Source: Mobula birostris (lineage: Eukaryota). From it: a stretch of DNA of 64,000 nt. Positions 29,950-61,299 of the stretch are shown piece by piece; within the stretch, counting starts at the first letter, position 1; every line of letters starts with the position of its first letter. A model generated the notes under the pieces. The model saw only the letters and a program-made list of their open reading frames with translations. It searched no databases and had not been told where the DNA came from. The stretch is taken from contig NC_092371.1 of NCBI RefSeq assembly GCF_030028105.1, positions 96,065,064 through 96,129,063 of the forward strand, given 5' to 3'. The position numbers and the translations under genes were made by a program.

Positions 29950-32900
29950 GTTGTCAAGAAAACAATCTCTGCCTCAATGTCGCAAAAAGAAAGGAGCTGT
30001 CTGTGGACTACAGAAGTAATGGATACAGGCTAACCCGTATTGACAGCAATGGATCTGGGGTTGAGAGGTTTACGTACCTCGGCATTCCTATCACCGAGGA
30101 CCTCACGTGGTATGTACACACCAGCTGTATGATGAAAAAGGCATAAAACAGCACCTCTTTCACCTCAGACTGTTGAGGAAGTTTGGTGTGGGCCCCCAAA
30201 TTCTAAGAACTTTATACAGGGGCACAATTTACATCTGAACTGGAGGGGGACAAATATTCTTGCAGGTAGATTTGCTAGAGAGGCTCCAGTGGATGTAAAC
30301 TAGATACTAGGGGGTAGGGGAAACACAATGTAGGAACAGATGCAGGGGAGAAGGAAGAAAAGGAAAATATTAAAGTTATTTCCACCGTTATTGATAAACA
30401 GAGAATAGGAGGTGGACAATTTCTTACATGCATTTATCTTAATGCTAGGAGCGTTATAAGAAATGTGGATGAGCTTAAAGTATAGATCGATACCTGAAAG
30501 TATGATGTGGTAGCTATTAGTGATACCTGGTTACCGGAGGGGTGTGATTGGCAACTAAATATTCCTGAATTTAATTGTTTCAGGTGTGATAGAATCGGAG
30601 GGACAGGAGGGGGAGGTGTTGCATTTCTTGTCAGAGAAAATATGATCGTGGTGCTCTGGCAGGATAGATTAGCGGGCTCGTGTAGGCAGGCTATTTGGAT
30701 GGAATTGAGGAATAGGAAAGGTGTAGTAACACTTACAGGGGTGTATTATAGACGACCAAATAGGGAGCGAGAATTGGAGGAGCAAATTTGTAAGGAGATA
30801 GCAGATATTTATAGCAAGCACAAGGTTGTGATTGTGGGAGATTTTAATTTTCCACACATAGACTGGGAAGCCCATACTGTAAAATGGCTGGATGTTTTGG
30901 AGTTTGTAAAATATGTGCAGGATAATTTTTTGCAGCAATACATAGAGGTACCAACTAGATAAGGGGCAGTATTGGATCTCCTGTTAGAGAATGAGATAGG
31001 TCAGGTGACGGAGCTTTGTGTTGGGGAGCACTTCGGGTCCAGTGATCATAAGGCCATTAGTTTCAATATAATTATGGAGAAGGATAGGTCCGGACCCAGG
31101 GTTGAGATTTTTGATTGGAGAAAGGCTAACTTTGAGGAGAGAAGTGCGAAAGGATTTAGGAGTGGATTGGGACAATTTGTTTTACGGGAAGGATATAATA
31201 GAGAAATGGAGGTCATTTAAAGGTGAAATTTTGAGGGTACAGAATCCTTATCTTCCTGTTAGATTGAAAGGAAAGGTTAAAAGTCTGAGAGAGCCATGGT
31301 TTTTAAGGGATATTGGAAACTTGGTTCGGAAAAAGAGAGATATCTACAATAAATATAGGCAGCATGGAGTAAACGAGGTGCTAGAGGAATGTAAAGAATG
31401 TAAAAAGAATCTTAAGAAAGAAATTAGAAAGGCTAAAAGAATATATGAGGTTGCTTTGACAAGTAAGGTGAAAATAAATCCCAAGCAGTTCTGCAGTTAT
31501 ATTAATAGCAAAAGGATAGTGAAGGGTAAAATTGGTCCCTTAGAGAATCAGAGTGGACAGCTATGTGTGGAGCTAAAAGAGATAGTGAGATTCTGAACAA
31601 TTTCTTTACTTCGGTTTTCGCTAGGGAGAAGGATATTGAATTATGTAAGATAAGGGAAACAGGTAGGGAAGCTATGGAAACTATGACGATTAAACAAGAG
31701 GCAGTACTGGAGCTTTTAAGGAAAATAAAAGTGTGTAAGTCTCCGGGTACAGACAAAATATTTCCTAGGACCTGGAGGGAAGTTAGTGTGTTAATAGCAG
31801 GGACTCTGACATAAATATTTCAAATGTCATTAGAAATGGGGATGGTGCCGGAGGATTGGCATATTGCTCATGTTGTTCCATTGTTTAAAAAATGGTTCTA
31901 AAAGTAAACCTAGCAATTATCGGCCTGTGAGTTTGACGTCAGTGGTGGGTAAATTGATGGAAAGTATTCTTAGAGATAGTATATATAATTATCTGGATAG
32001 ACAGGGTCTGACTAGGAATAGTCAACATGGGTTTGTGCGTGGAAGGTCATGTTTGACAAATCTTATTCAATTTTTTGAAGAGGTTACTTGGAAAGTTGAC
32101 GAGGATAAAGCGGTGGATGTTGTCTATATGGACTTCAGTAAAGCCTTTGACAAGGTTCCACACGGAAGGTAGGTATTAATATTGAAGTAGTAAAATGGAT
32201 TCAGCAGTGACTGGATGGGAGACGCCAGAGAGTAGTGGTGGGTAACTGTTTGTCATATTGGAGGCCAGTGACTAGTTGTGTGTCTCAGGGATCTGTACTG
32301 GGTCCAATGTTGTTTGTCAGATACATTAATGATCTGGATGATGGGGTGGTAAATTGGATTAGTAAGTATGCAGATGATACTAAGATAGGTGGTGTTGTGG
32401 ATAATGAAGTAGGTTTTCAAAGCTTGCAGAGACATTTAGGCCAGTTAGAAGAGTGGGCAGAAAGATGGCAGATGGAGTGTAATGCTGATAAATGTGAGGT
32501 GCTACATTTTGGTAGGACTAATCAAAATAGGACATACATGGTAATTGGTAAGGCATTGCAGAATGCAGTAGAACAGAGGGATCTAGGAATAATGGTGCAT
32601 AGTTCCCTGAAGGTAGAATCTCATGTGGATAGGGTGGTGAAGAAAGCTTTTGGTAAGTTGGCCTTTATAAATCAGAGTATTGTGTATAGGAGTTGGGATG
32701 TAATGTTGAAATTGTACAACGTATTGGTAAGGCCAAATTTGGAGTATTATGTACAGTTCTGGTCGCCGAATTATAGGAAAGATGTCAACAAAATAGAGAA
32801 AGTACAGAGAAGATTTACCAAAATTTTCCCTGGGTTTCATCACCTAAGCTACAGAGAAAGGTTGAACAAGTTGGGTCTTTATTCTTTGGAGCGTAGAAGG

Positions 32901-33720
32901 TTGAGGGGGGACTAGATAGAGGTATTTAAAATTATGAGGGGGATAGATAGAGTTGACGTGGATAGGCTTTTTCCATTAAGAGTGAGGGAGATTCAAACAA
33001 GAGGACATGAGTTGGGAGTTATAGGGCAAAAGTTTAGGGGTAACATGAGGGGGAACTTCTTTACTCAGAGAGTAGTAGCTGTGTGGAACGAACTTCCAGC
33101 AGAAGTGGTTGAGGCAGGTTCGATGTTGTCATTTAAAGTTAAATTGGACAGCTATGTGGAGAGGAAAGGAATGGAGGGTTATGGGCTGAGTGCAGGTCGG
33201 TGAGACTAGGTGAAAGTAATGGTTCGGCACGGACTAGAAAGGCTGAGATGGACTGTTTCCACGCTGTAGTTGTTATATGTTTATATGGTTATATTAATTA
33301 AGAGCATCGTGACTTGCTGCATCACTGTCTGGTATGGGAACTGTAACTGCCTTGATCGCAGGATTCTGCGGAGTGGTGCAGACAGCGCAGCACATCTGTA
33401 GTTGTGAACTTCCCATATTTCAGGACATTTAGCCTTAGGGTTTGGGTTAGGATGTGAAAAGAGGGTCCGAAGGATGACTAGGGACCCGCAGCACCAGAAC
33501 CAAAATCTATTCCAGCTGCAACCATCCGGGAAACTTTTCCGCAGCATAGAAGCCAGGACCCGGTACAGCTTCTTCCACCAGGCCATCAGATTGATCAACT
33601 CACGCTGATTTGAGTGTATTTCTATGTTCTATTGACTGTTTTATTCATTATAAATTATTAGGATTGCACATTGCACATTTAGACGAGGCGGAACGCAAAG
33701 GTTTTTACTCCTCATGTACG
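29950..33720 (+). mobile_element. Rex1/Babar-like fragment (29950-30229 and 33300-33720) split by CR1
   Basis: The uninterrupted copy at 46840-47510 reads GGCACAATTGAGAGCATC across the site. Confidence 0.85.
30230..33299 (+). mobile_element. CR1 LINE, near-complete ORF2, AT-rich subfamily
   Basis: VAISDTWL, VGDFN, NYRPVSLTS, YMDFSKAFD, YADD. AATT at both junctions (30226-30229 and 33296-33299); absent from unit U3. Confidence 0.94.
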
Positions 33721-36319
33721 TGAAAGTCAATTCCATTCCAATTGGTAATTCGATGTAAAGTGCACATTTTCAAACTTTGAGAAAAAAAATTGAAAACTAT
33801 CCGTATGCCAGACAGTTTTCTTTGCAACAACAAATGCAACGCTGCAAGAACCTGTAGCAGAACCGAAAGGACATCACCCAGCATCACACTGTAGATTGCG
33901 CCTTGTATCCTGCGCCAGATTCACCCCTTGAAAACATTGGAGACACCATTGTTTGCGGGGTATGGGGAAAAGATTAGTTGTATAATATGATTTATTTTAA
34001 TTCATTGTTTTAACTATAAATTTGTTTATTTGTTTCAGGAACTAATGTTAAATAAAACGTCAGTTTAATTGTTTAATAATTTGCTCCAATTTTAATATAT
34101 TTTAAACCACGTCAATGATTTTAATGGCTGGATATTTGGTGATGTTCCTGAAAGCCGAAGTTCCATAACAACAGACCACAAGGAAGACAAACGTTGTTTT
34201 AGCCTTTGTCACGAGAGAATTTGGGTAAACGAATGGTGACGTCATTGTATGGTTTCGCTATCGCTGCTTAAAATATGGAAGGATTTCAGCAGACGTTCCA
34301 GATTCACCGTCTGAGAAGAAATTGCGTCATCTGACCCTGTTTTCTCTAGAATTTACGAGAATGAGGGGAGATCTCGATGAAATGTAAAATTCCAACAGAT
34401 CTTAACATGCTGCATAATGATAAAATACGTTTCTAGATGAGGAGTCCACAACCATCGCACCAGTCTCAGACTGAACAGTTGCTACTAGGAAAAGAAGTGA
34501 GAAGGGATTTTCCTCCAACAGTTTGGGTTTGGCCGAAAAGAATCACCTTAAGTGCATCAATAGCCAGAAGGAAATGGCAGTAAATCATAAACATGAAAAA
34601 TTCTGCAGATGGTTGAAATCCAAAACAGCACACAGAGAAAATGCTGAAGGAAAACGGCAGTTCAGGCATCTTTTATGCAAATATATAGTTAGTCCACGTT
34701 TCGGGCTGAGACCCTTCTTCAGGAAGGACAGCACTTGCACATACATTTAGAAATGTTTAACCTGGCCAATTTTTAAACATTTCGCTAAAACGTCACCAAG
34801 GCTACGGCTTCAGAGGAGGCTCAACAGACCTAAAGAGAAATTAGCACACATTCAATCTCAAAAATGAAAGACTTAGCCTATGAGAGGCGATTGTTGTCTC
34901 TCTGCCTGTACTCAATGAGGGGAAATCTCAATGCAACTTATGGTAGAGTGAAAGACCTAGATATAATGGACGTGCTGATACTTGCGTTACTAGAGAGTCT
35001 CGGATACAAGAACATAGCCTTAGAATGAAGGAAGGTTCCCTTGAAACTGAGATGAGGAGGAATTTATTCAGACAGAGTGTGGTAATTCAGTAGCTCTCCC
35101 ATAGGCGGCTGTTGAGGCCACGTTAATGGGAGTATTTCGGGCTAATTTAGTAGTCTCTTGAATGGTAAGGCTTTCGGGGATAAGATGGGAGAATTGGGTT
35201 GAGAACAATAGCACGTTTGAATTTACAGAACAGAGTCGATCGACCAAATGACTTTATTTTGTACCTATGTATTATGGTCCTATGGCTTAATCCATCGTGA
35301 CTGTGTTTGTCGAGAAAGTACTACCCAGCTTCATCACATTGGCACCATTTTGTCTGCGGCCCTGCAAATCGCGGCCAGTGGAGTAAACATCCAGAGATTT
35401 CTAACTATGATACGTTTCACGGTTCCACGAGATATTTATGTATAACTCACGAGTGTCGTATGTCTCATTTGGTTGTATTAATTTTTTTGTGTTTTTTTTC
35501 AATATTCAATTTCATTTTGCCGGACATAGTTACATATAGAAATGGTGGCAAGCAATTTAACAAATCTTACTAATTCCCACACATTGTGCGCGTACTCTTT
35601 AACTGTTAAATTTGTATGTTTGCTGCTGATGTTATGGCCAATACATTACATATTATGGGTTAGGATGAGAACATTCTTGGTCAGACATTGGCACTGAAGA
35701 TGTCAACTGTAGTGAGTAATAAGAGGATATTTGGCCAAGGAATTACAGACAAAGGATTTGATTCCAGAACGCACAGCCCGGTGCGAATTGTTCATGATAT
35801 TCGGAGTATATTGACAGCTCCAGGCATTTGCAGAGACATTTCAACGCGTGTATGTGGAGCTAGATGAATCATTTTGTGATGAATTACTGTTCGGCCTGAG
35901 ATTATTGGTGATAATCGATGTGCAGTAAACAAAAACATTCATAACTGAGTCCTAGATGCGACAAAAACAGAGATGAGCATTTATCAAACTTAAGAGGAAG
36001 GTGGAAGTTGAGCATAATAAATGTATAAGTCGTGCTCGCTGTGATGTAGAAATACCTCTCTGCTCCAGGTCAGAGAGCTGAGTGGCATTGCAGGTTGTCA
36101 GGTCAATTTGAAAACAGGGAGAGGTGGAGTCAGTTTCCGGTGTACAGATTTTGAAATGCACCATGTGGTCTTCCTATTGTTTTACGAGAAATTTTTGGCT
36201 CATCTCTTCCTTGATTAGAATTGGCGTAAAACAATGCAGAGATTAAATGAACTGTTTTTAGGTCATAACGTGAGGTGCAGCACTTGGGTAAAGGAACTGC
36301 CGGGTTCAGACAGTCCTAA

Positions 36320-40421: not shown

Positions 40422-41196
40422 GCACGGTAATCAAAACTTCGGCATTTCGCAATGACCCACGGCTCATCCTCTGTCTTAACAGCATTTGCACAACGAGGGG
40501 GATATGCTCATCTTGAGGAAGAGCCACGACGGATTTCCTATTTACATACTTTATCTTACGTAAGCTAAGTTTTGTATGCACTTCCACCTTCTGGGCGCCA
40601 GGGTAGCGTAGCGGCTCGCTACATCTCCGGGGTTCCTTAGTTCGGAGGTCAGTTCTGGCGCCGTCGGTAAGGAGTTTGTTTGTTCTCCCCGAGAACGGCG
40701 TGGATTTCCTCCGGCTTCTTTGGTTTCCTCCCACAATCAACAGACATTCTCTTTGGTGGGTTATTTGGTAATTGTAAATTGTCCTGTGAATAGGCTAGTG
40801 TTAAAAAGGCTGGCTGCTGGGCGGTGCAGCTCACCCGTTGTACCGGAAGGGCCTGCTTTACGCTGTATCTCTAAATAAATGTGATTCACTACTTTTCTCT
40901 TGATGTGATATACCATTGATTCTTTCTTGGTCGCCATCACTTTGCAGACATATATTTTCTTCGCCCTACCCTCTCTGTTCTCTTTAGTTAAACTATTGAC
41001 ACATTCTGATGAAAAGGCATTCAACTAAAATGTTAACAGTTATACGGAAAACTGTCTGAATTGTTCAGCATTTCCTGTTTTGATGAAACCTGTTTCGAAG
41101 ACATTGAATTGGTAATACTTTGTTATGGAAACAATCGTGGGACGTTGCTGTGCCCGACCGTAAATAATAGCGCGCACACAGCCGGCCGGCTCCCCC

Positions 41197-41510
41197 TTAC
41201 GCGCAGCCTGAACTCGGAATGCTTCGCTTAAGCGGAGACTGGAGAAAACTGCTTTAACGCAACATGTGTACTCTTCGTGTGAGCTCCACTAGGAGGCGGC
41301 CAGGGTGAGGTAACTCCGGCTGTCGGTCTGGTCGCTGTCGGAATGTCTCGATACCTGTGGCCCCAACATTACCGTCGGTTCTCCAGCACATTTCCACCCC
41401 TCCAGGGTAATAACAATCGACTGGACACACCAGAGTCGTCTTATGTATTTCAGTGATCTGTTTAGACGCGGGTGGAAGAAAAGTAATCGAAGAGCTCGAC
41501 AAATTTCCAC
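41197..41510 (-). pseudogene. Orphan Ig light-chain constant pseudo-exon A (different class from C1/C2)
   Basis: Minus-strand acceptor TTTGCAG, then GNLSSSSITFLPPASKQITEIHKTTLVCPV..YYPGGVEMCWRTDG, a frameshift, SRSYLTLAAS*WSSHEEYTCCVK (TAG 41289-41291), another frameshift, and SPLKRSIPSSGCA-stop. Confidence 0.88.
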
Positions 41511-41851
41511 CTGCAAAGAAAAAGAAATATCCATTGTTAAAGAACGAAAAGAAAGCGTGTGTCAGTCATTTAAAACTTAGTGGCTAGACCTGTGGCCTCT
41601 CAGGTTCAAGTCCCATACCGAAGACGAGTGATAAACGTGGAGTGACATTGTACTACGGTGCCGAATACGCGTTAAACTAACGGAATGACTTAGTTGCGGT
41701 GACTGAAAAAGACCCGTGGGCGTTATTTTCAAGAGAAGCAGGAGAGATTATTCTTCTGGGCAATATTTATAATTCAAAAATATTACAAAACAATTAGCTA
41801 TCTACACTGCAATCACCGAGACATTCCGGTGCCAGTTACAATTCTAATCTT

Positions 41852-42030
41852 TATAGGAAGAGGTACAGTCGACGTATCGGGCCGGGACCCTGTAGTCCTG
41901 ACGAAGGGTCACGGCCCGATACGTCGACTGTACCTCTTCCTATAGATGTTGTCTGGCCTGCTGCGTTCACCAGCATTTTGTGTGTGTCTTCCTTGAATTT
42001 CCAGCATCTGCAGATTTCCTTGTGTCTTCA
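41852..42030 (+). mobile_element. Penelope pLTR fragment with a 40-bp inverted arm
   Basis: Arms 41852-41891 and 41905-41944 are complementary at 39/40 positions; the terminus CCAGCATCTGCAGATTTCC follows. Confidence 0.85.
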
Positions 42031-43679
42031 ATTCTAATATTTGTTTGCGAACACGAAAGCCCATATATCTGAGGGTGATTTATTTTAACCTGGATTACCC
42101 TTTGCAGAGCGGCTACTTCGGGGTTTTCACAGAGAGATGTCGAGATCTAAATGCATGAATATAGAAGAAGACCGGAGATCGCTCTGCTGCATGGGTTTTA
42201 GCAAAACGACCCAGGATACCTGAGCAAACACAGAGCGCTACTCGCACACTTCCGAATTCGCACGGGATCACATACAAGAGCATTCGCTCTTGCTCAGCCT
42301 TCCACCTTCAGCTCCCTTCCTATCCCATGACTCTCGAACAATCGCCTTCTGCTGTGCATCGTTGATTGAAGGGCATCAACCTCCGGAGAGTTATTTACGG
42401 TTATACTCCTCAGACCTCAGACGCACGATCAGCAATTTTGTATACTATCATTAACTTTCAGGGCAGCACTGGGCTCGTCCTTGATTTTGCTAGTTTCCAT
42501 GACTTTTTCCACTTTAAAGTAGAGTAAACGTATTCATTTTAAGTCCTACTTTCTCTCCTAAGGCTCAACAACTCGACCAACAAATTCAACTTAAGTGGAC
42601 CATTCCTCTATCCAACTACCTCTCCGTTCTGTATATATTTAAAGAATCTCTTAGGATCAACTTATCTGCCAAGGAATCTCATGTCCTCTTTTCCCTCCCG
42701 GTGTCTTCCTTAACTGGACTCTAACTGTCCTTGTTTTCCTAACAGTGTTGGTTAAATCAGTTCCATCAGCCAGCACTCCTGAATCCTATCTACCCCGCCG
42801 TTCACTCTGACAGGAATATATTTGCCCTGAATTCTCTGTGTCTCATTTTAAAAAGCTTCCGACTTGCCAGACTTTCCCATAACTGCCAACACCTTCTCAG
42901 AATTACTCTTTGAGAGTTCTGGTCCAATCCCATGAAACTTTGCTTTGCTCCAATTTAGGCCTTTAACTTGTGAACTACTCCCATGTCTTTTAAAATCCTT
43001 TAAAATCCAATCCAATTATGCTAATTGGTCCCAAAGCTCTCCTTTAATTACTTGGCAATCCTCATTTCCAAAGAGGAAATTAATTCTGATGCTGTTAAAG
43101 AATCAATGGAGCACTTTATTAAATTCTTTAACTAAATTGAACACTTGCACTAAATTCTGTATTTAGGACACGGTGCAACTACAGAATTATCCATCATCTG
43201 CTGAGGACAGATATTCACTGACGGGCAGTGTAGGAGCTTCTCTTTCAATCTAACTCCTGATGTCCTGGCCCTGACAGTATTTATCGTGATACTGTAAATG
43301 AAATTAAATTGTTTTTAATTTATCATTCTCGTATCCGTGGAGTGTTTGAAAGGGGAACGTGCAGGAATGCATTTTACTCTTGCAAACCCGGAGAGATAAT
43401 AATGGGAGAAAGTAAAGGAGCTTTACTTTGTATCTAATTCGTGCACTAACTTCCGTATCGCATGAAACATTCACAAAAAGGTACTTCAAGACTCAGATAG
43501 AAACTAATTGTCCCTCCACACAACTCTGCCAAATACTCCCAGATCTGAAACAGCGCGGTTTAGATACTGCGACAATACCCTGAAACCTGCGGTATCGATT
43601 ACTTTAGAAACGTATCGTGATCATATAAAGCAAAGGGGGAAGGTGCTAACCATATAACGCCTATTCAGCATTTAATATG

Positions 43680-44580
43680 TGTCATAGTGGGGGACGTTGG
43701 GAACGGACCTGAATACAAGACACAGACACTGAAGTACTAGGAACAGGGGTAGACCAGACAATTAGAGTTAGGGACGGGAATGGAAGCAGAGAAGGAGCTG
43801 GGACAGGAACACAGACAAGGCTAGGGAAGCAGGACCAGGACGAGGGACTGGGAACGAGGAGCCTGGGCGTGGACTCCGAGCCAGAGACTGGACAAGGACC
43901 CAGAACCTGTATCTTGACTCGGGCTCGGACCCCAAAACCAGGCGAAGACGTGGCGAGGCTTGGGTTCCTGGAGAACAGGCGAAGACGTGGCGAGGCTTGG
44001 GTTCTTGGAGGCTCGACGAGGACATGACGGGGCAAGTGTATTTCGAGGCAACTCCTGGGCAGGACGCGGGACTCATCCCCACGGATGCAAGGGCAGGAAG
44101 AGACAGATCCAGCCGCAGGGCAACAGCAAACGTCCTGGCTTACCCGACGGAGACAAGGGACAGGAAGGGGCAGAACCAATCGCAGGGTTATGGCAATCGG
44201 CCTGGCTTACCCGACAGGGGCAAGTTACAGGAAGGGACAGAACGAACCGCAGTGTAACGGCAAACGGCCTGGCTTACCCGACGCAGGCAAGGGACAGGAA
44301 GGGAGCTAGGACCGGGTTGGCTCCCAGACTCGAGGCGGCCGGTAACGTCGGCGGGCTACGGAACAGCCAAATCCATATCGCGATGACAGCACTAGCCTTC
44401 TACCAGTGGGTTGCTCCAAGGGGAGACTGACGAGACGACCCAGCAAACACACTCGATCCCAGGGCGACTTATATTCCCAGCCCCAAGATGAGCATCAGGT
44501 GCGTTTGGTTAAGTCCAACCGAAACCAGGGACAGCTGGAAGACCTGCAGTCCGGCATCCGCGGACCAGACCGTGAACCGG
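43680..44580 (-). mobile_element. LTR-like insertion related to the 26932-28303 solo LTR
   Basis: Starts TGTCATAG; similar GC-rich internal repeats (GGCCTGGCTTACCCGAC x4); absent from U3. The right CA terminus and TSD are not clear. Confidence 0.65.
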
Positions 44581-47500
44581 AATGTCCAAATAATAGACCA
44601 AATCCAGTAATGTGCCCTTTCAAGATAACTGCAGAATGATTGCTGCAAATTTAAATTAGTTTAATGCAACTTCTTAAATATTCTTGGGGGCTATTTTGAT
44701 TAATCTTATTTAATAACAAATGGAATTCGAATCATGTATGTCTGCAGGATTCACGATAACTGTACTGCTGCAATCTCTAGTGAGGTGATAGAAAGCGCCA
44801 TGGAAACAGTCGTTTCTGTGTTCATCATCCTAATACATTAAAGAAGACTTCTAATCATTCGCTTCAAATCATTTTGTAACAACAATGCAGTTATTCCCAT
44901 CAGCCCTGAAGGTTTAAATGCAGCTGTTACTTTCAAACTAGCCTCATTCGGTGTTATGTTAATGTGAATATAGAACGATTGAAGTTACAAGCAATAAATC
45001 TCAGTAGTCTTATGTTTAGAAATAACGAACACTTGCCGTACAGTAACAAATACAGTAACGCACAGGCAAAATGCTGGAGGAACTCAGCAGGCCAGGCTAA
45101 CTATCCCTTTCAATTTCTTTCTGTCAAACATGCTCTCAATGTACGCTCCCGAAAATGACTCAAATCTATAGATTTTCGTCTGATATTCTTTGAGGAATAA
45201 AAGAACCCCGTAAAATAGGGTAACACCCATGGATTAAATATTTGTTCATAATTCCTATTCCTGCTAATAGCTCCTCAAGTAACTAACATATATTTTGTAA
45301 TTTTCCCATCTACTATGCTTTGACATTCAATAAGACCTACGGAATCTTCTCGCTGTTCACCTCCTCTGCTTGAATGAAGAGTCGAATTTACAAAACAGCT
45401 TTTACTTCGAAAATGCCTGCTTAATTTATCTAAGAACATCATCAGCATTATGTGAAGTTTTGTATGACGTGAGCGATCTAAGACCATGATTATTCTTGCA
45501 ATTTTTTCTGCAGAAGTCGTATGCCATTGCCTTCTTGTGAGCAGTGACTTTACAAGAGGAGAGACCCCAGCTATTATCATCACTCTTCAGAAAATGTCTG
45601 TCAGGCGTCTGTGGACGCATAACCAGGACTTGTGATATGCACCGGCTGCTCATACGACCATCGAGCACCTACTCCGTGGCTTCACGTGACGCTTAACGGT
45701 GGAGGGAGGGGCGTGGCTGAGCAGGCAGTACACCTGTAGGTTTGCTATGTTTCTATGTTTACACTCAGCACCTTATCTTGAAAAGATGTTTTCCTTTTTG
45801 CTCTTTTGCGTACATGTGACCTTCTGTTGCACCTCACTACCTTCCGACGTCATATTCGTACGACAATCAAAATGAAAGTCAGATGCTGGAAATCTAAAGC
45901 AAAAACTGAACATGCTGGTGACCCGGCAGGTCAAACAGCGTCTGTGGAAGAAGAAACAGAATTTGCGTTTCAGATACCACACCTGCCATCAGGAATTCTG
46001 ATGAATTGAATTGTCGGCAATGCCTCTTCTTACACCAAGACTCCCTGCCTTGCTGACTGTTCCCAGCATTTTCTATATTCAAATTTAGCTGCACGGTTAC
46101 TGTTCCGAGCATGCCTTTCGGCGTTTCGCAATTAACAGCGGTTGATCCTCTGTCTTGACAATATTTGTACAATGCGGGGACATGCTTATCTTGAGGAAGA
46201 TCCGCAAAAGATTTCCCTTTTGTACATGTTACCTGACTTAATCTAAGCTCTTGTATTCACTTACACCTATCCTTGCCCGTGTTCCTGGGCATCTGGGTAG
46301 CGCAGCTGTCAGCGCAACGCTACAAAAACTTAAAACTGTTTTAAATAAAATTAGTTGCTGAAACAAATCGGGGAGTACCATAGTTCGGACTTCACTAACG
46401 GCGCTGTGTGTTGGAGTTTGTTCGTTCTTCCCGTGAACGCGTGGGTTTCTTCCGGGTGCTCCGGTTTCCTCCCACAGTTCAAAGACGTTCCCGTTACTAA
46501 GTTAATTGGTCATCGTAAATTCTCCTGGGCTTAGGCTCGTTTGAAATAGGTAGGTTGATCGACAGTGTGGCTCGTTGGACCGGAAGGGCCTGTTGTGTGC
46601 TGTATCTCTAAACAAGTAAAACCCTGTGATTGACCACCTTTCTCATGATGGGGTGGGCCATTCGTTTCCCCTTCATCTTATGCCGGACATGGTTTTGTTT
46701 TCTCTGCCCTACCTATCCTCTATACTTCAGCCATTTACACTTTGTAATGCAAGGGAGTTGAACTAAAATGTTAAGGATTATACGGGAAGCTGTCTGACTT
46801 GTTCCGCATTTCCAGATTTGATTAAATCTTTTTTGACGACATACAATTGTCAAAATAATCTCTGCCTCAATGTCGCAAAAAGAAAGGATCTGGCTGTGGA
46901 CTACAGAAGGAATGGATACAGGCTAACCCGTATTGACATCAATGGATCTGGGGTTGAGAGGTTTAGGCACCGCAGCATTCACATCTCCGAGGACTCACGT
47001 GGTCTGTACACACCAGCTGTGTGGTGAAAAAGGCAAAACAGACGGTTGAGGAAGTTTGGTATGGGCCCTCAAATTCTAAGAACTTTCTACAGGGGCACAA
47101 TTGAGAGCATCGAGACTTGCTGCATCACTGCCTGGTATGAGAACTGTAACTCCCTTAATTGCAGGATTCTGGAGAGAGTGGTGCTGACAGTCCAGTGCAT
47201 CTGTAGATGTGCACTTCCAATTTTTCAGAACATTTAGGGTTAGGGTGTGAAAAAAGTGTCCGAAGGATGATTAGGGATCCTAGGCACCAGAACCACAATC
47301 TATTCCAGCTGCAACTATCAGGGAAACGTTTCTGCAGCACAGAAGCCAGGACCAACAGGCTCCAGGACAGCTTCTTCCACCAGAGCATCAGACTGATTAA
47401 CTCCTGCTGATGGGAGTGTATTTCTATGTTACATTGACTGTTTTATTCATTATCAATTATTATGAATTACTATGATTGCACATTGCACATTTAGACGGAG

Positions 47501-48639
47501 ACGTAACGTAAAGATTTTTACACCTCATGTACGTGAAAGTCAATTCCATTCCAATTGGTAATTCGATTTAAAGTGCACATTTTCAAACTTTGAGAAAGAA
47601 ATTTGAAAATTATCTGTATGCCAGACAGTTTTCTTTGCAACAACAAATGTAACGCTGCAAGAACCTGTAGCAGAACCGAAAGGACATCACCCAGCATTAC
47701 ACACAGTAGATTATGCCTGGTATCCTGCGCCAGATTCACCACTTCAAAACATTAGAGACACCATTGTTTGTGGGGTGTAGGGAATGGTACAGAAATGGTG
47801 ACGTCATTGTGCGGTTTAGCTATGGCTGCTAAAAAGATGGAGGGATTTCAACAGGCGAGTTCCAGATTCGCTATCTGAGAAGAAATTGCGGCGTCTGACC
47901 CCGTTTTCTCTAGAATTTACGAGAATGAGGGGAGATCTCGATGAAAATGTAAAATTCCAACAGATCTTAACATGCTGCATGATGACAAGATACCTTCCGA
48001 GACGTCGAGTCCACAACCATCGCACCAGTATCAGACTGATCGGTTGCTACTAGGAAAGGAAGTGAGAAGGGATCGCGGCCTTTTGCCGGAATTCCGACTT
48101 ATGGGCGTTCCATCAAATACCCAGATATGACACGTCGGCACAGCCTACTCCTTACTCAACCACACCTATTTAATGTGCTGTCGATGGTGTAATTCTCCAT
48201 CGTTTGGAGGCATCGTCGTTAAATTCGTTCATAAAACCGCGGATTTCTCAATATTAACGGTAAGGGCATGAACCTGACGCTGAGATCGAATATCAACCAG
48301 AACCTAATGAGGGTTTGAACATGTTAATTGACAAAATGCCATATTCCTCTTCCCAATTTTATGGTTAATAACCAATACAACCAGAACACGGCATCAGCTG
48401 CTCGTCCTCTGGTTATACTCAATCGTTGGCACACTGGATATATATGTTGCCAGAAGAATAAGATTTTATTTTCTGTAAAAATAAATTCTACATCACATTT
48501 TCAAAGTGGAAGTTTTTTTCATACATTAACTTAAAGCACAACTGTAGGAAAGCCGCTTGCAAACAGAAAGGAAACAATCGTGGAATGTTGCTGTGCCCGA
48601 CCGTAAATAACAGCGCGCACCCAGCCGACTGGCTCCCCC

Positions 48640-48958
48640 TTACACGCAGCCTGTCCTCTGGATGCTTCGCTTCCCTGGAGACTTGAGTATAACCCCACAA
48701 GTTAACTTTTCTTGTGAGTTCCACTCGGAGGCGGTCAGCGTGAGCTAACGGCTGACGGTGTGGGTCTGATCGCTATCCCGGACGGCTCGGTCTGACTGGA
48801 CACCAGTCCATGACACCGTAATCCATTTCTCAAGACACCACTACCGGTCCAGAGAAAAAAAATATAGACTAGTCATAGCAGAGTCACCATCTGCCCTTCT
48901 TTGTTCTGTTTAGTCACGGGTGGAAGAAGAGCAATCGAAGAGCTGGGCAATTTTTCAT
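48640..48958 (-). pseudogene. Orphan Ig light-chain constant pseudo-exon B (paralog of A)
   Basis: Minus-strand acceptor TTCCAG, then EKLPSSSIALLPPVTKQ...VTLL*LV...VRDSDQTHTVSR*LTLTASEWNSQEKLTCGV...SPGKRSIQRTGCV-stop. The downstream 3-prime UTR (48570-48639) matches 41129-41196; candidate AATAAA on the minus strand at 48465-48470. Confidence 0.85.
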
Positions 48959-49344
48959 CTGGAATGAGAAAGTAATGTCCATATTAAAGACTGATAACAA
49001 ATCATGCGTCAGACATTTAATACTTGGTGGCTTGACCTGTGGCCAATCCTTTGGCAAGTTGGGGGTTCAAGTCTCACACTGAAGACAAGTGACAAATATG
49101 GACTGACATTGTACAATGGTACTGATTGCGTACCGGTCGTGTTGGCGCGTGGCCAAGTGGTCAAGGCGTCGGTCTAGTGATCTGAAGGTCGCTAGTTCGA
49201 GCCTCTTCGTAAACAAATACAGAGCTCTACTCGAGCACTTCTCAATTCGCGAGCGATAACATACACAAACATTCTCTCTTCCTCAGCCTTGCAACTTCAA
49301 CTCACTTCCTATGCCATGCTATGAAGCCAGGAAGGCCGAGGTAT

Positions 49345-49800
49345 CAACAATCACTCTCTCGCGTGCATTCCTGAGATAGGAGCCGCCTATGTACTGAGAT
49401 GAGGCGAGGCCATCCGTCAGTCATAGTCGACCATGTGTATGGCGTCACAGTTGTCCAAATATGCAAGTCTGTGCAGTACGATATCAACGGCAATCTGTTG
49501 CACATGTAGCTAGTCCTCCCCCACCCCCACCCCCACGCATGTGGTGAACCCAAAGGAACGGCAGAGACCGATACAGTTTGGTACCAGCAGCGTCGCAGTG
49601 GTTAACAGTCAATGTGAGACTGCCGCAGGGACTGCGGCTCCAGATTGTTCCCTCGGGATTTACTCCGAAGCCTTCCCCATGAGTGGGTATTGCCACAAGG
49701 CAACAGAGGTTAGAGAACAGAGTTTTCCTTCTCCTAGATGAGATGCCAACCACGGCTAACGAGCCCCATCTGCTCCAAACAACCAATGCAGCAGCTGATC
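49345..49800. mobile_element. RTE-associated short element
   Basis: Absent from U2. The motif TTTTCCTTCTCCTAGATGAGATGCCAACC resembles RTE non-coding ends (recalled, not searched). Confidence 0.5.
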
Positions 49801-50202
49801 GATAAACGCATTTATCACTGCATTGCGACCAACACCCCAATGCTTCGACCCGCTTCGTCTATGCCGACTAAGGAGTCTTCTTGAGCTGGACCCATTCACC
49901 TGCATTTTCCACGTATCTCTTTGAACACTTCCTATCCGTGCACATCTCCAAACGGCTTTTAAACCTGTAATTGCTGCAGCGCCTGTCGCTTCTTCTGGCA
50001 GGTACGTTTGTATATCTACATAATCACCAGTTTTGTGATGAAAAGTTATTCATAATCCCCTTTGATATTTCTCACTCACATTAAGCCTATCCACTCCGGT
50101 TTTAGGCACCGCGTCAATGGGAAATGGACTTGGAGCATTCACCCTGCAAACCTCGATAACATCACACCAGCCTACTTGCGTCTAAGGAAAGCAATCCCAG
50201 AT

Positions 50203-50238
50203 TATCCTGACGAAGGGTATCGGCCCGAAACGTCGACT
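50203..50238 (+). ncRNA. Second hammerhead core in a truncated Penelope pLTR
   Basis: CUGACGA-A-GGGU(AUCG)GCCC-GAAAC-GUC-GACU is intact, but truncation leaves only 2 bp of stem I. Confidence 0.45.
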
Positions 50239-51087
50239 GTACCTCTTCCTAGAGATGCTGCCTGGTCACATCTTCAAATCAGCATTGTAAATTCGGGAGC
50301 CGTGATTACTCACGCACAAAACCACGTTAACTACACCTGATTATTCCTTGCGCTTCTATATGCATATAGATCCTGTCTCACAGAATCACCTGCAGTAACT
50401 TTCCCACCACTAATTTTAGGCTTGCCAGCCTGTAATTCCGCAGCTTATCTTTAACGTTTCTCTTAAATAAAGATGCAACATCAGCCAACCTTGTGCATCT
50501 AAGCTTGCTACACGTTTTCGGATATAGATGGCAAAGATACCGGTAGCTATTCACCATTATACTACTCAAAAACACAACAACAGTGATTTTGCGTACTATC
50601 ATTACCTTCCAGGGCATCACTGTGTTCGTCCCTCAGTTTTCTAGCTTCCATGACTTTTCCTATTCTACGAAGAGTAGAAGTCTTCATTTAGATCCTCCTT
50701 CGTCTCGACGATCAAATTAATTCTTAAGTGGACCTTTACTCTCCCCAGGTGCCTTTTATATTTAAAGAGTCTCTTAGGATCAACCTATCTACCAAGTATG
50801 TCTTATGTCCCTTTAAGTTCCTGATTTCTTTATTAACTAGAATCCATCAGTCCTTATTTCCCTGACAGGTTTTTCAACATCCCATCTGGCTATTCCTTTC
50901 ACTTCGGCAGACCTCAATCTTCTTCCATCAGTCAGCTGTCCTGAATCCTACCTACCTTGCCGTTCACTGCTATATTGGCCCTGAATTCTCTGTGTCTCAT
51001 TTTCAAAAGCTTCCGACTTGCCAAACTTCACTATGCCTGCTAACAGCTTCTGTGAATTGATCTTTGAGAGATCCGGTCTAATAGAAC

Positions 51088-54000
51088 ATAGAACATACAA
51101 TAGTACAGCACAGCACAGGCCCTTCGGCCCACAATGTTGTGCCGACTCTCAAACCCTGCCTCCCATATGAGACCCCACCTTCAATTCCTCCATATACCTG
51201 TCTAGTAGTCTCTTAAACTTCACTAGTGCCTCTGCCTCCACCACTGACTCAGGCAGTACATTCCACGCACCAACCACTCTCCGAATAAAACACTTCCTCT
51301 AATATCCCCCTTGAGCTTCCCACCCCTTACCTTAAAGCCGTTCTCCTCTTGTATTGAGCAGTGGTGCCCTGGGGAAGAGGCGCTGGCTATCCACTCTATC
51401 TATTCCTGTTATTATCTTGTACACCTCTATCATGTCTCCTCTCATCCTCCTTCTCTCCAAAGAGTAAAGCCCTAGCTCCCTTAATCTCTGATCATAATCC
51501 ATACTCTCTAAACCATTCAGCATCCTGGTAAATCTCCTCTCTACCCTTTCCAATGCGTCTACATGCTTCCTATAGTGAGGCGACCGGAACTGGACACAAT
51601 ACTCCAAGTGTGGCCTAACCAGTTTTATAGAGCTGCATCATTACATCGCAACTCTTAAACTCTATCCCTCGACTTATGAAAGCTAACACACCATAAGCTT
51701 TCCTAACTACCCTATCCACCTGTGAGGTAACTTTCAGGGATCTGTGGACATGTACCCCCAGATCCCTCTGCTCCTCTACACTACCAAGTATCCTGCCATT
51801 TACTTTGTACTCTACCTCGGAGTTTGTCCTTCCAAAGAGCACCACCTCACACTTCTCCGGGTTGAACTGCATCCGCCATTTCTCAGCCCACTTCTGCATC
51901 CTATCAATGTCTCTCTGAAATCTTTGACAATCCTCTACACTATCTACAACACCACCAACCTTTGTGGCGTCTGTAAACTTGCCAATCCGCACCCCTTGTA
52001 CCCCAACATCCAGGTCATTAATAAAAATCACGAAAAGTAGAGGTCCCAGAACAGATCCTTGTGGGACACCACTAGTTACAATCCTCCAATCTGAATGTAC
52101 TCCCTCCACAACGACCCTGCAGGCAAGCCAATTCTGAATCCACCTGGCCAAACTTCCCTGGATCCCATGCCTTCTGACTTTCTGAATAAGCCTACCGTGT
52201 GGAACCTTGTCAAATGCCTTACTAAAATCCATATAGATCACATACACTGCTCTACCCTCATCTATATGCCTGGTCACCTCCTCAAAGAACTCGATCAGGC
52301 TTGTTAGACACGATCTTCCCTTCACAAAGCCATGCTGACTGTCCCTGATCAGACCATGATTCTCTAAATGCCCATAGATCCTATCTCTAAGAATCTTTTC
52401 CAACAGCTTTCCCACCACAGACGTAAGGCTCACTGGTCTATAATTACCCGGACTATCCCTACTACCTTTTTTGAACAAGGGGACAACATTTGCCTCCCTT
52501 CAATCTTCCGGTACCATTCCCGTGGACAACGAGGACATAAAGATCCTAGCCAGAAGCTCAGCAATCTCTTCCCTCGACTCGTGGAGCAGCCTGGGGAATA
52601 TTCCGTCAGGCCCCGGGGACTTATCTGTCCTAATGTATTTTAACAACTCCAACACCTCCTCTCCCTTAATATCAACATGCTCCAGAACATCAACCTCACT
52701 CATATTGTCCTCACCATCATCAAGTTCTCTCTCATTGGTGAATACCGTACAGAAGTATTTAAGGAGGACCTCGCTCACTTCCACAGCCTCCAGGCACAAC
52801 TTCCCACCTTTATCTCTAATCGATCCTACCTTCACTCCTGTCATCCTTTTTTTTTTCTTCACATAATTGAAGAATGCTTTGGGGTTTTCCTTTACCCTAC
52901 TCGCCAAGGCCTTCTCATGCTCCCTTCTTGCTCTTCTCAGCTCTTTCTTAAGCTCCTTTCTTGCTGCCCTATATTCCTCAATAGACCCATCTGATCACTG
53001 TTTCCTAAACCTCATGTATGCTGCCTTCTTCCACCTGACTAGATTTTCTACCTCACTTGTCACCCATGGTTCCTTCACCCTACCATTCTTTATCTTCCTC
53101 ACCGAGATAAATTTATCCCTAACATCCTGCAAGAGATCTCTAAACATCGACCACATGTCTATAGTACATTTCCCTGCAAATACATCATCCCAATTCACAC
53201 CCGCAAGTTGTAGCCTTATAGCCTCATAATTTGCCCTTCCCCAATTAAAAAAATTCCTGTCCTCTCTGATTCTATCCTTTGCCATGATAATGCTAAAGGC
53301 CAGGGAGCGGTGGTCACTGTCCCCCAGATGCTCACCAACTGAGAGATCTGTGACCTGACCCGGTTCATTACCTAGTACTAGATCTAGTATGGCATTCCCC
53401 CTAGTCGGCCTGTCCACATACTGTGACAGGAATCCGTCCTGGACACACTTAACAAACTCTGCCCCGTCTAAACCCTTGGAACTAATCAGGTGCCAATCAA
53501 TATTAGGGAAGTTAAAGTCACCCATGATAACAACCCTGTTATTTTTGCACCTTTCCAATATCTGCCTCCCAATCTGCTCCTCTGTATCTCTGCTGCTACC
53601 AGGGAGCCTATAGAATACCCCCAACAGAGTAACTGCTCCCTTCCTGTTCCTGACTTCCACCCATACTGACTCAAAAGAGGATCCTGCTACATTACCCACT
53701 CTTACTGTAGCTGTAATAGTATCCCTGACAAGTAATGCCACCCCTCCTCCCCTTTTTCCGCCCTCTCTATCCATTTTAAAGCACTGAATCCAGGAATATT
53801 GAGAGTCCATTCCTGCCCTGGTGCCAGCCAAGTCTCTGCTATGGCCACTACATCATAATTCCATGTATGTATCCAAGCTCTCAGTTCATCACCTTTGTTC
53901 CTGATGCTTCCTGCATTGAGGTACACACATTTCAGCCCTTCTACCTTACTGTCTCTACACCGTTTATTCTGCTTCTCTTTCCTCAAAGCCTCTCTATATG

Positions 54001-54397
54001 TCAGATCTGGCTTTCCTCCATGTACTTCTTTCACTGCTCTATCGTTCTGGGTCCCATCCCCCTTGCAAATCACTTTAAACCCTCCTGAACCATGCCAGCA
54101 AAATTACCTGCAAGGATGTTGCTCTCCCTCGAGTTCAGGTGCGACGCATCCAATCTGTACAGGTCCCACCTTCCCCAGAAGAGATCCCAATGATCCAAAA
54201 ATCCAAATCCCTGCTCCCTGCACCAACTCCTCAGCCACGCATTCAACTGCCATCTCCTTCGATTCTTACCGTCACAGTCACGTAGCACTGGCAGCAATCC
54301 TGAGAACACCACCCTTGAGGTCCTGTTCTTCCGCCTTCTGCCTAGTTCCCGAAACTCACACTTCAGGACCTCATCCCTCTTCCTGCCTCTGTCGTTG
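51088..54397 (-). mobile_element. Young CR1 LINE: ORF1 esterase C-terminus, endonuclease and RT
   Basis: Long ORFs 52995-53831 (endonuclease) and 51615-52478 (RT, FTDA/FADD region); esterase DASHLN in 54070-54312; (AGAACAT)n tail at 51088; absent from U2. Confidence 0.95.
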
Positions 54398-55699
54398 GTC
54401 CTATCATATTTTGCTTTGCCTCGTTTTAGGCCTTTAACTTGAGAACTAACCCTGCCTCCTTTTAAACACTCCTTTAAAATCTAATGGAATTATGATGACT
54501 GGCTCCAAACCGCCCCGACCGGTCGCTTGCAAAGTCTCAATTCCCTAGAGGAAGTCGATTCTGATGCTGGGATGGAAATAATGGAGCTCCTAACTAAATT
54601 CCATATTTAGTTTCAGGATACGGTGCTACTGCAGAATTCTCATCGGCTGTTGAAGATTGTTACTCACTGACGGGCAGTGTCGCAGCTTTTCTTTCCATCT
54701 ACCTCGTGTTGTCCTGGCCCTTCCAATATTTATCCCGATATTGTAAGTGAAATGAATTTGTTTTTAACTCAGCATACTCGTATCCTTGGAATCTTTGAAA
54801 AGAAATCGTACAGTAATAAATTATACTATTGCAAACTCGGGGAGATAATAATTTGGGAAAGTAAAGGAGATTTACTCTGTACCTAATACGTGCAGTAACT
54901 TATTCTGTGCCGCATGAAACAGTCACAAAAAAGTACCTCAAGAATCAGATGTAATCTAAATTTCCCTCCGCACAACTTAACTCAGATACGCCCAGGTCAG
55001 AAACGGCGCGATTTAGCTATTGGGAAAATAACCTGAAACGTGGTGCATCGATTACTGCGGAAACATATCGATAAGATAAAGGTCAGGAGGGATGTGTCAG
55101 CCATGAAACCCTATGCAGCAGTTAATGCCTCCAAACAATAGCCCGAATCCTGTAACTTGTCCTTGCAAGATAACTGTAGGATGTTTGCTGCAAATGTAAA
55201 TTTAGCATAATTCAAATCATTAAATGTTCCTTCAGGCTATTTTGATCAATGTTACTGTTACAGTTATCATGTATGTTTTTTCAATGTTCGTAGGGTTTAT
55301 GTCACCTGTACCACAGCAATCTATGGTGAGGCGATACAAAACTCCGCGGAAGCGGGCGTTTCTGTTGTTCATTATCCCAATACATGATAGAAGACTTGCA
55401 ATTTTTCGCTCCATTTGGTAACAACGATGTCCTTATTTCCATTCGAGTTGTGTGCTCAAGGTTTAAATGCAGTTGTTGCTTTCAAATCAATCTCATCCGG
55501 TGTTTCGTTAATGTGCATATAGATGGATTTAAGTTGTAAGCAACCAATCTCAGTGGTCTTTTGTTTGGAAATAATAGACACGTGATGACAGTAGATTACC
55601 CGGAAAGAGTTCTGCCACTTATCTATTGATAGAATAAGTTCACTTACTCGCTTTCTTATGAAAAAACCTGTTGCAATGAGGACTTGAATTTACACAGAA

Positions 55700-56100
55700 A
55701 AACATAGAAACATAGAAAACCTACAGAGTTGTGCCGAACATGTCGCTACCTTAGAATTTACTAGGCTTACCTATAGCCCTCTATGTTACTAAGCTGCATG
55801 TACCTGTTTAAAAGTCTCTTGAAAGACCTTATCGTATCCGCCTCCACCACAGTTGCCGGCAGCCCATTCCACGCACTCACCACTCTTTGAGTAAAAAACT
55901 TACCCCTGGCATCTCCTCTGTACCTGCTTCCCAGCACCTTAAACCTGTGTCCTCTTGTGGCAACCATTTCAGCCCTGGGAAAAAGCCTCTGACTATCCAT
56001 ATAATCAATGCCTCTCATCATCTTGTACACTTCTATCTGGTCACCTCTCATCCTCAGTCGCTCCAATGAGAAAAGCCCGAATTCACTCAACCTATTCTCT
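55700..56100 (-). mobile_element. CR1 3-prime fragment (same subfamily as 2478 and 62150)
   Basis: Tail CATAGAAACATAGAAAACCTAC and the RT C-terminus. Confidence 0.88.
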
Positions 56101-57295
56101 AATTTATAGGATTTGGAACTCGTCCTTCAAATTCTGTGTTGTTTTGTGATATTTAGGTACCTGCTGGTTGTCAGATTCTAATTCTCCTGCCCGACAGGAA
56201 ATATCCCATATCCCAGGTTCGCTCCCCTGGTCTACATACAGCAACACACAAACAAAATTCTGGAAAAGAGGAGCTCAGCATGCCAGGCGTAATCTATTCC
56301 AACTACTCCTTTCAATTTCATTCTGTTAAACTGCGTCTTTTTTATGCTTTGAAAATGACTTTAAAATGTAGAGTTTGTTCTCATATTCTTTAAGGAGTAA
56401 AGAGACCCCTAAAATAGAATAACATCACTCATGGCTTAAATACTTGCTCTAAAACTCATTATCCTGCTAATAGCTCCTGATGTCGCAAACATATATTTTG
56501 TAAGTTTGTTATGTTCGATGGTTTGACTGTTATTAAGAACTCAGAATTATTTCGCTGTTGCCAACTTCTGCCTGAACGATGAGACTTATAGAAATATAGT
56601 ATTCACTTCCAGATTGTCTGCTTGATTCATATAAACACATCATTAGCATTATGTGCAGTGTTATATGACGTGGGCGATCATGGTATTATCCATGACATGA
56701 TGGTTCTTCGCAATTTTTCCCTACAGAAGTGGCTTGACATTAACAACTCCTTGTCAGTATCTTTTCAAGTCGAGTAAACACAGCCATTGTCAAGTCAGAG
56801 ATTGTCTGACTGTCGTCAGTGGTCGCATAACCAGGACTTGTGATATGCACCAGCTGCTCATACGACCATCCACCGCCTGCTCCCCTGCTTCACGTGACAT
56901 TGATCGTAGCACTAAGCAGGTGCGACGCATTACCTTAAGGTTACCTGCGCTTTAGCGGTGGGATGGAGCGCCTCACGTCTCCTTTGGTAGAGACGAATCT
57001 TAACCCCACAGTGCGTTTTCTAAAAATATACAGACAAGTGGCTTGGACTTCATTATCAACCCTACAGATCTGTTAATAATTGCCAATATTGTTTTCTCTT
57101 TATTTGTTGCTTTCGAAAATCTCGGACCAACCATCTTTAATAATGGTGCAAGCATCGCGTATTTTAAATATATTGTTCAACTGAATGGAGAAGAGGACAA
57201 GTTGTTCATCTAAAATACATCGACGAAATACAGAACTCGAAACCAAATACTTACCTGTCTAAAAACTTGAAATTACTTTGACACAGGAAAAAGTT

Positions 57296-57388
57296 GGCAA
57301 CTTGTGATTGGTGTCAATGTGCCATTCTGTTTGCACTGATTTGCATAAATAGGGAACACGCAGTGCCACCTCGTCACAGGATTCATAA
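57296..57388 (+). promoter_or_regulatory. Ig light-chain V promoter, cluster 2
   Basis: GGCAACTTGTGATTGG (ATTGG 57307-57311), octamer ATTTGCAT 57339-57346, CCTCGTCAC (CGTCA 57372-57376), TTCATAA 57382-57388. Collinear with the cluster 1 promoter. Confidence 0.85.
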
Positions 57389-57455
57389 GCGAGCTGAAAA
57401 GTTGAGACGCCACTTAACCGCAGCACCTTCCGTGAGCTTCACTCTATTAACTACA

Positions 57456-57504
57456 ATGTCTTGGTGGGTTCGTGTGGTCAGTACGCTGGTGGTTACTGCA
57501 ATTT
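57456..57504 (+). pseudogene. Ig light-chain leader exon, cluster 2
   Basis: MSWWVRVVSTLVVTAI plus 1 nt, donor GTGAAT at 57505. Homologous to leader 1. Confidence 0.88.
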
Positions 57505-57628
57505 GTGAATATTTTCTATGGACATTATATTGAATCTCTAATACCATTCAATGATATTCTTCTCGCACTTCTGGTATTACCGGAATATTAATCTCGGTAC
57601 ATTGTTTCTTCCCTCTGAACTTTTCCAG

Positions 57629-61280: not shown

Positions 61281-61299
61281 AGATTTCCTCGTGTTTGCG

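Follow-up and report, generated by a model that had tools for sequence, protein, structure and literature searches.

Orphan constant exons in a manta ray light-chain locus as probable relics of a truncated cluster from a second lambda lineage

Introduction

We have studied two orphan immunoglobulin light-chain constant (C) exons, A and B, that lie within a lambda locus of the manta ray Mobula birostris, in a stretch of 64,000 nucleotides (NCBI RefSeq assembly GCF_030028105.1, contig NC_092371.1, positions 96,065,064 to 96,129,063 of the forward strand) that we call the window. According to reviews, all lambda genes of cartilaginous fish are germline-joined (PMC4279169, PMC5192425). The described genes closest to A and B are those of a batoid lambda group, termed II-b below: XP_062929544.1 of Mobula hypostoma (P0106), XP_059839177.1 of Hypanus sabinus (P0107), XP_072911503.1 of Hemitrygon akajei (P0260) and XP_051888544.1 of the sawfish Pristis pectinata (P0103). 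A and B share with these the lineage of the C exon, the N-terminal pattern GGxL..PSI..LPP, the tail SPLKRSI..SGCA-stop and the splice phase, and the sawfish gene is collinear with them in its intron and 3' flank. The intact genes are germline-joined clusters of leader (L), joined variable (VJ) and C exons, whereas A and B are without leader and VJ and carry 4 and 6 lesions, respectively.

Classical type II or lambda chains, such as those of the sandbar shark (AAC59643.1, P0148) and Hydrolagus colliei (AAA59371.1, P0137), belong to the same lambda family and chromosome as A and B, and include the products of two clusters in the window whose constant exons we call C1 and C2. Their germline-joined cluster layout and the ending ..SI.RS.C are also found in the lineage of A and B, clade II. 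They form its sister, clade I, and differ in C domains that are ~40-45% identical between the clades, in a stretch before LPP that is 2 residues shorter, and in the motifs FNPG..DIEW and QQETDNTFS, where clade II has FSP/FFPG..EVSW and RDSDQTYS. The sigma-2/sigma-cart (type I) genes are also cartilaginous-fish light-chain clusters, germline-joined in skates; C1 and C2 group with chains named lambda or type II. A further parallel exists on spotted gar chromosome 20, where an orphan C-lambda pseudogene marks the loss of a whole lambda isotype (Guselnikov et al. 2018, PMC5985310). There, as here, a defective light-chain C exon is the only local trace of a lineage; unlike the gar case, intact relatives of A and B persist in related rays, and at least the II-a group remains in Mobula birostris itself (P0097).

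We find that A and B are probably constant exons, now dead, of a truncated lambda clade II-b cluster that is present in two tandem copies, a reading to which we give a probability of about 0.87.

Results

Exons A and B are dead light-chain constant exons

Both exons lie on the minus strand between two plus-strand lambda clusters, the inverted placement for which they had been singled out in an initial annotation. They are preceded by acceptors of the polypyrimidine-AG type, ...ttctttttctttgcag directly before exon A and ...ctttctcattccag before exon B. Reading through the lesions, with X at the breaks, gives LSSSSITFLPPASKQITEIHKTTLVCPVDCYYPGGVEMCWRTDGNVGATGIETF-x-DSDQTDSRSYLTLAAS-stop-WSSHEEYTCCV-x-LQSPLKRSIPSSGCA-stop for exon A and LPSSSIALLPPVTKQ...AVRDSDQTHTVSR-stop-LTLTASEWNSQEKLTCGV..KRSIQRTGCV-stop for exon B. 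The light-chain C1-set skeleton, LPP..TLVC..W..DG..YLTL.AS.W.SHE.YTC..KRSI..SGC-stop, is complete in both read-throughs. Of the Cys...Trp...Cys core, A has kept both Cys residues and the Trp; B has TGA at the first Cys and at the Trp, in positions that can still be aligned. The exon ends are in register with those of the sawfish exons, A closing with ..SGCA-TAA and B with ..TGCV-TAA, and the form is that of a single C exon with a phase-1 acceptor and a terminal, interchain Cys that lies 1-2 codons before the stop. The splice acceptor, C1-set skeleton and Cys-stop ending reported for these minus-strand exons are thus present at the positions given for them; the distance from splice site to LPP (inclusive) is indeed 14 residues, compared with 12 for C1 and C2, and the distinctive motifs YYPG, (R)DSDQT and SGC-stop are likewise confirmed.

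The similarity to light-chain C exons is far above chance. The first 57 residues of exon A alone match the Pfam C1-set family PF07654 (E 1.1e-4, 22.9 bits, cutoff 21). In tblastn the sawfish chain P0092 as query gave E 2.7e-16 on exon A and 1.7e-15 on exon B, and the Narcine chain P0099 gave 2.3e-20 on exon B. The best matches of the N-terminal half of exon A in the PDB were lambda light chains, a result that indicates "lambda-like" only. As had been proposed, these are light-chain exons and not domains of T-cell receptor (TCR), major histocompatibility complex or immunoglobulin heavy chain.

Lesions were listed from an alignment of A and B to two intact sawfish exons (Table 1). Exon A carries 4 (a single stop and 3 deletions, of which 2 shift the frame) and exon B carries 6 (3 stops and 3 indels, of which 2 shift the frame), with no lesion common to the two. 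Both exons are dead. Neither has the open reading frame (ORF) with leader and V(J) upstream on the same strand that identifies a functional light-chain gene. The orthologous exon A in a related species is ~96% identical, and its TAG codon is unchanged there.

No leader, V or J segment had been noticed upstream on the minus strand, and our searches agree. A clade-II V profile run against all six frames of the window matched only the two plus-strand VJ exons. A sensitive tblastn search for minus-strand V, J or leader upstream of A and B returned nothing better than E 0.1, and nhmmer with the sawfish leader-VJ region found no leader or VJ match in the sequence around the exons, only the start of the intron. 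Permissive tblastn for a decayed VJ gave matches at chance level (e.g., 45635-45519 and 56988-56797, E 0.4-1) that were inconsistent between A and B.

A and B are assigned to a second lambda lineage

To which lineage do the two exons belong? An HMMER scan of the intact half of A against 1.8 billion representatives found no close intact relative of exon A in that collection. The best single-domain matches, at 40-48% identity (47-48% for the highest), were chondrichthyan light chains: P0035 (elephant shark), P0051 (catshark), P0075 (basking shark) and P0039. The tails of P0035, P0075 and P0051 match the motifs of A and B, and a search with P0075 gave orthologues at 54-74% identity in numerous sharks and, among batoids, in Pristis, Narcine, Mobula, Hemitrygon and Hypanus.

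Two chondrichthyan clades are well supported in a tree built from 80 C domains: clade I (support 99/94), which contains C1 and C2 together with many cDNAs of the elephant shark, the sandbar shark lambda and Hydrolagus type II, and clade II (94/95), with the P0075 group, its elephant-shark member included. A and B are sisters (89/80) inside a batoid subgroup of clade II (100/98), beside P0106 of Mobula hypostoma and P0107 and P0158 of Hypanus. Their identity to C domains of batoid clade II is 54-56%, compared with 34-40% for those of batoid clade I and 33-38% for C1 and C2. Exon A shares the motifs GGxL...PSI..LPPASKQITE and SPLKRSI..SGCA-stop with the II-b proteins of myliobatiform rays. Thus the expectation that A and B do not nest with C1 and C2 is supported by the repaired-frame tree, by the identities, and by collinearity of intron and flank with a sawfish clade-II gene (see below). 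Judged by sequence, A and B most probably belong to lambda clade II, subclade II-b. Clade I/type II identity was considered as well; the tree, the identities and the clade-II intron all point away from it, and its formal rejection is borderline.

Clade-II genes that are intact have the germline-joined L-VJ-C layout and span 2.2-5.6 kb. They fall into subclades II-a and II-b, each with sharks and batoids, and II-c, which as sampled comprises sharks and Callorhinchus. No annotated Mobula birostris protein was found in the 90% cluster of the M. hypostoma II-b protein. Clade-II proteins of skates (Rajiformes) were likewise absent from word-based searches, the Leucoraja and Rhinoraja matches falling in clade I; such searches may have missed clade II, or it may have been lost in skates.

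Full-length trees separate II-a from II-b across sharks and rays. In the C-domain tree the II-a and II-b C domains cluster by species or order (Heterodontus P0090 and P0096, three Pristiophorus proteins, and all batoids), which suggests gene conversion of C exons between neighboring clade-II genes.

The second lineage lies within lambda

The initial annotation had proposed that A and B are relics of another isotype. That they are orphan exons of a distinct lineage stands; the lineage itself, however, is sister to classical lambda inside lambda. In a full-length tree with a teleost lambda-2 outgroup, clades I and II group together (99/98). When kappa chains of tetrapods and teleosts and a TCR-beta chain serve as outgroups, the two are again united (100/97) within an all-lambda clade (100/99) that also contains lungfish, tetrapod and sterlet lambda, together with lambda-2 on a long branch, and from which kappa is excluded. 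Holocephalans (Callorhinchus) are present in both clades, and the split of I from II therefore predates the divergence of chimaeras and elasmobranchs.

Two candidate identities were rejected on the basis of these trees. Lambda-2 came into question through likeness of the C-terminal tail, but nine ostariophysan lambda-2 chains form a separate long branch (100/100) far from clade II. Kappa was rejected because kappa chains stand outside the all-lambda clade that holds clade II. Outside cartilaginous fish, the best matches of the clade-II chains P0075 and P0085 were mostly tetrapod, lungfish and sterlet lambda, P0085 also having weaker kappa-named matches; no protein of turtle, gar or coelacanth, groups in which sigma-2 is reported, was among the matches of either. 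The accessions used as sawfish sigma-2 and sigma by Ohta and Flajnik's group (XP_051901911 and XP_051894291; PMC12227049) are far from the clade-II accessions XP_051888543/544. We therefore read A and B, from their sequences, as probable remains of a second paralogue within lambda that is sister to the classical one, and not of another isotype.

Collinearity of each relic unit with a sawfish II-b gene begins shortly after the VJ exon

Each exon is embedded in a much longer stretch of homology to the sawfish II-b gene (locus L003, encoding P0103; VJ exon 10136-10492, C exon 14915-15247). By blastn, both unit A (from 45433 down to 40437) and unit B (from 56636 down to 45848) are 66-76% identical to L003. 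The match sets in ~140 bp 3' of the VJ exon, spans the 4.4-kb J-C intron and the C exon, and ends 4.5 kb further downstream. In nhmmer the homology of both units begins 127-141 bp past the end of the sawfish VJ exon. The clade-I locus L004 matches the units through dispersed repeats only. Relative to unit B and the sawfish gene, unit A is without ~1.7-3.7 kb just 3' of the exon; unit B is lengthened by repeat insertions, e.g., 51088-53787, and its upstream end lies ~430 bp from the octamer of plus-strand cluster 2, so that the two are head to head. A partial copy, Z, halts ~0.5 kb before the expected start of a C exon, and no C-exon relic was found beyond it. Since the collinearity of each unit with the sawfish gene sets in shortly after VJ, each is a II-b cluster minus its L-VJ part, and A and B are tandem copies of that VJ-less remnant.

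Several other features of the units were observed. Within the 3' flank of unit B, 80 bp (46407-46486) are 80-84% identical to sequences near clade-II genes (L003 2693-2771, which is L001 4594-4672, and L002 14378-14432). These sequences sit between the divergent II-b and II-a genes in sawfish and 1 kb 3' of the C exon in bamboo shark, and the piece may be either a small repeat or a regulatory element under conservation. A hairpin at 41852-41944 (40-nt arms, 98% complementary) and a short site at 45061-45097 have enormous depth in all read sets, and many read joints connect ~41987-42025 to ~45067; the two sites resemble the termini of a mobile element of very high copy number. The GC-rich stretch 43682-44430 has long ORFs of 165 and 156 aa on opposite strands and a 67-nt tandem repeat (44094-44303), and is high-copy in reads; it is probably a minisatellite or repeat and not a gene. 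Rfam and tRNA scans of 28-58 kb gave no matches.

The host clusters are classical lambda, and the two lineages are neighbors elsewhere

The clusters on either side of the relics had been described as sigma-cart-like. This did not hold. In tblastn C1 has 70% identity to the C domain of sandbar shark lambda (P0148) and 71% to a basking shark relative, C1 groups with Hydrolagus type II, and the product of cluster 1 is, the split codon excepted, the Mobula birostris RefSeq lambda model XP_072101501.1 (P0257). On this evidence the C1 and C2 clusters are classical cartilaginous-fish type II/lambda. The ropefish sigma-2 C domain shares, by eye, CLVSGF.PG..DI.WT.DG with C1, which may explain the sigma-cart label. 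Cluster 1, with a germline-joined VJ, is open from end to end even though its 6-kb J-C intron has long interspersed nuclear element (LINE) reverse-transcriptase ORFs (15469-17828). Cluster 2 has frameshifts in framework region 1 of its germline-joined VJ exon (~57685) and in C2 (~61210).

Table 1. Coordinates of the relic exons, their lesions, the units that contain them and the host clusters (window positions; L003 is the sawfish II-b locus; lineage assignments are from sequence)
Feature	Coordinates	Strand	Description
Pseudo-exon A	41510->41197	minus	constant exon, probable lambda clade II-b; phase-1 acceptor AG 41512-41511; stop TAA 41199-41197
Exon A lesions	41340/41339; 41318/41317; 41291-41289; 41255/41254	minus	11-nt deletion; 3-nt deletion; GAG>TAG; 1-nt deletion (in order)
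Pseudo-exon B	48958->48640	minus	second copy, probable lambda clade II-b constant exon; acceptor AG 48960-48959; stop TAA 48642-48640
Exon B stops	48875-48873; 48832-48830; 48747-48745	minus	TGT>TGA (first Cys); TGG>TGA (Trp); TAC>TAG (Tyr of YLTL) (in order)
Exon B indels	48862; 48808/48807; 48674/48673	minus	+1 nt; -2 nt; -9 nt (in order)
Relic unit A	40437..45690	minus	3' flank, exon A and whole J-C intron; collinear with L003 19463 back to 10635
Relic unit B	45813..56898	minus	layout as unit A; collinear with L003 19751 to 10633
Partial copy Z	28972..34508	minus	3' flank only; 83-88% identical to 45813-48073
Lambda clade I cluster 1	13816..20746	plus	apparently intact; octamer 13816; leader ATG 13924; VJ exon end ~14454; C1 ~20420-20746
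Lambda clade I cluster 2	57339..61290	plus	pseudogene; octamer 57339; leader ATG 57456; C2 ~60971-61290

The interleaving of two lineages had also been put forward as new evidence of physical linkage. Intact genes of clades I and II, however, already have neighboring accessions on one chromosome in four other genera and in Mobula hypostoma. The accession endings are ..979 (clade I) and ..980 (clade II) in Cetorhinus, ..708 and ..706, ..707 in Heterodontus, ..483 and ..503, ..504, ..506 in Hemitrygon, and ..315 and ..312 in Hypanus; for Hypanus, Heterodontus and Cetorhinus, as for Mobula hypostoma, orientation and spacing are known from accession order only. In M. hypostoma the clade-II subtypes are close by accession (II-b ..544, II-a ..520). 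In the sawfish the II-b gene (minus strand, 10.221-10.226 Mb) is head to head with II-a (plus strand, 10.238-10.241 Mb), and a clade-I gene lies at 9.84 Mb, 0.38 Mb from this pair.

The relic exons diverge no more slowly than their flanks

The Kimura two-parameter distance between A and B is 0.39 for the exon, compared with 0.24-0.32 for six blocks of intron and flank. Exon divergence is thus not below that of the surrounding non-coding DNA, and there has been no purifying selection since the duplication. Non-coding identity in the same blocks is 74-80% between A and B and 66-76% between manta and sawfish. Since the former is barely above the latter, the duplication would be very old. The relics have survived owing to the slow pace of change in batoid DNA. 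Units A and B end at one and the same position in the ancestral gene (L003 ~10620-10635) and have ~250 bp beyond it in common, from which it would follow that L-VJ was lost before the duplication.

Discussion

The history that we favor would run as follows. In an ancestor of the manta-type ray, a II-b cluster would have come to lie inverted among classical clade I (type II) lambda clusters, and would then have lost its leader and VJ exon. The block that remained, made up of the J-C intron, the C exon and a 3' flank of ~4.5 kb, would have been duplicated in tandem, giving units A and B and the partial flank copy Z. Functionless without a V exon or promoter, the C exons would have gathered independent stops and indels at the neutral rate.

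A different sequence of events would have complete L-VJ-C II-b clusters duplicated and functional for a time, with the VJ exon lost later and independently in each copy. The two C exons have no disabling lesion in common, and the split between A and B is nearly as deep as that between manta and sawfish, as such a history would predict; the common endpoint of the two units, the shared non-VJ sequence of ~250 bp beyond it, and exon divergence that betrays no purifying selection after duplication make it unlikely. Might the exons still be used, as alternative C exons reached by switching or trans-splicing between clusters, or as part of a non-coding regulatory transcript? Both acceptor sites are kept, there is low depth over 41091-41484 in RNA-like runs, and expression of V with the C of another cluster in sharks is described in a review (PMC4279169). 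Yet the stops and frameshifts in both exons, with the first Cys and Trp of B gone, and the neutral rate at which both have evolved leave this scarcely credible, and the RNA labels of the runs were guessed, one run being flagged as probably DNA.

The remaining alternatives concern lineage. A and B could be of a different isotype (kappa, sigma, sigma-2/sigma-cart or lambda-2) set among sigma-cart-like clusters, and their low identity to C1 and C2, a lineage older than the chimaera/elasmobranch split, and a tail, ..SL.S.LKRSI...C, that by eye resembles lambda-2 sequences in the supplement of PMC5985310 might be taken in that sense. We consider this very improbable, given that the host clusters are type II lambda, that clade II is nested with clade I in lambda with kappa outside and teleost lambda-2 apart, that the outside matches of P0075 and P0085 are mostly lambda, with none from turtle, gar or coelacanth, and that the sawfish sigma-2 and sigma accessions are remote from those of clade II. 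That A and B are highly decayed clade I copies of the C1/C2 type, made different by neutral drift alone, strikes us as extremely improbable: the terminal branches are long (0.62 and 0.45) and the topology test does not formally reject it, but both exons are closer to batoid clade II than to batoid clade I, have clade-II-specific motifs, and sit in ~5-9 kb of intron and flank collinear with the II-b locus, where the clade-I locus matches via dispersed repeats only.

Some observations weigh against the reading of A and B as exons of a truncated, duplicated II-b cluster. When A and B are forced into clade I, the approximately unbiased test gives a log-likelihood difference of 25 and p 0.054, a borderline value because the exons are short (~100 columns) and damaged. 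Chondrichthyan sigma, sigma-2 and kappa are excluded indirectly, by way of the tetrapod and teleost kappa and TCR-beta outgroups of the trees. The ~250 bp common to A and B beyond the intron homology match nothing else; a VJ remnant decayed past recognition could conceivably lie there, with the weak V-like tblastn matches (E 0.4-1) as its trace. Finally, there is the slight read depth over exon A in runs labeled RNA, which is indistinguishable from DNA.

As debris of the birth-and-death evolution that is usual in an antibody gene family, A and B require no new mechanism. A more general proposal, which we make only tentatively, is that cartilaginous fish have two anciently split and linked germline-joined lambda families that the four-isotype nomenclature does not distinguish, and that the relics are an inverted II-b cluster inside a clade I array, evolving neutrally since about the divergence of manta and sawfish. 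For the map of the lambda locus, shark and ray lambda would consist of two old paralogous lineages linked on one chromosome, with C exons apparently homogenized between neighboring genes and copies lost lineage by lineage. Corrected in this way, the window shows neither linkage of lambda with sigma-cart nor a hidden isotype. The collinear 4-kb intron of manta and sawfish is an example of slow neutral change of DNA in batoids.

For annotation, clade II can be told by its pre-LPP stretch, 2 residues longer, and by the motifs RDSDQTYS and KRSI..SGC. Among the sequences collected, a 125-residue shark lambda J-C fragment is filed under the bacterium Aeromonas veronii (NJI29836.1, P0049; 652-bp contig), and is almost certainly host contamination of a bacterial assembly.

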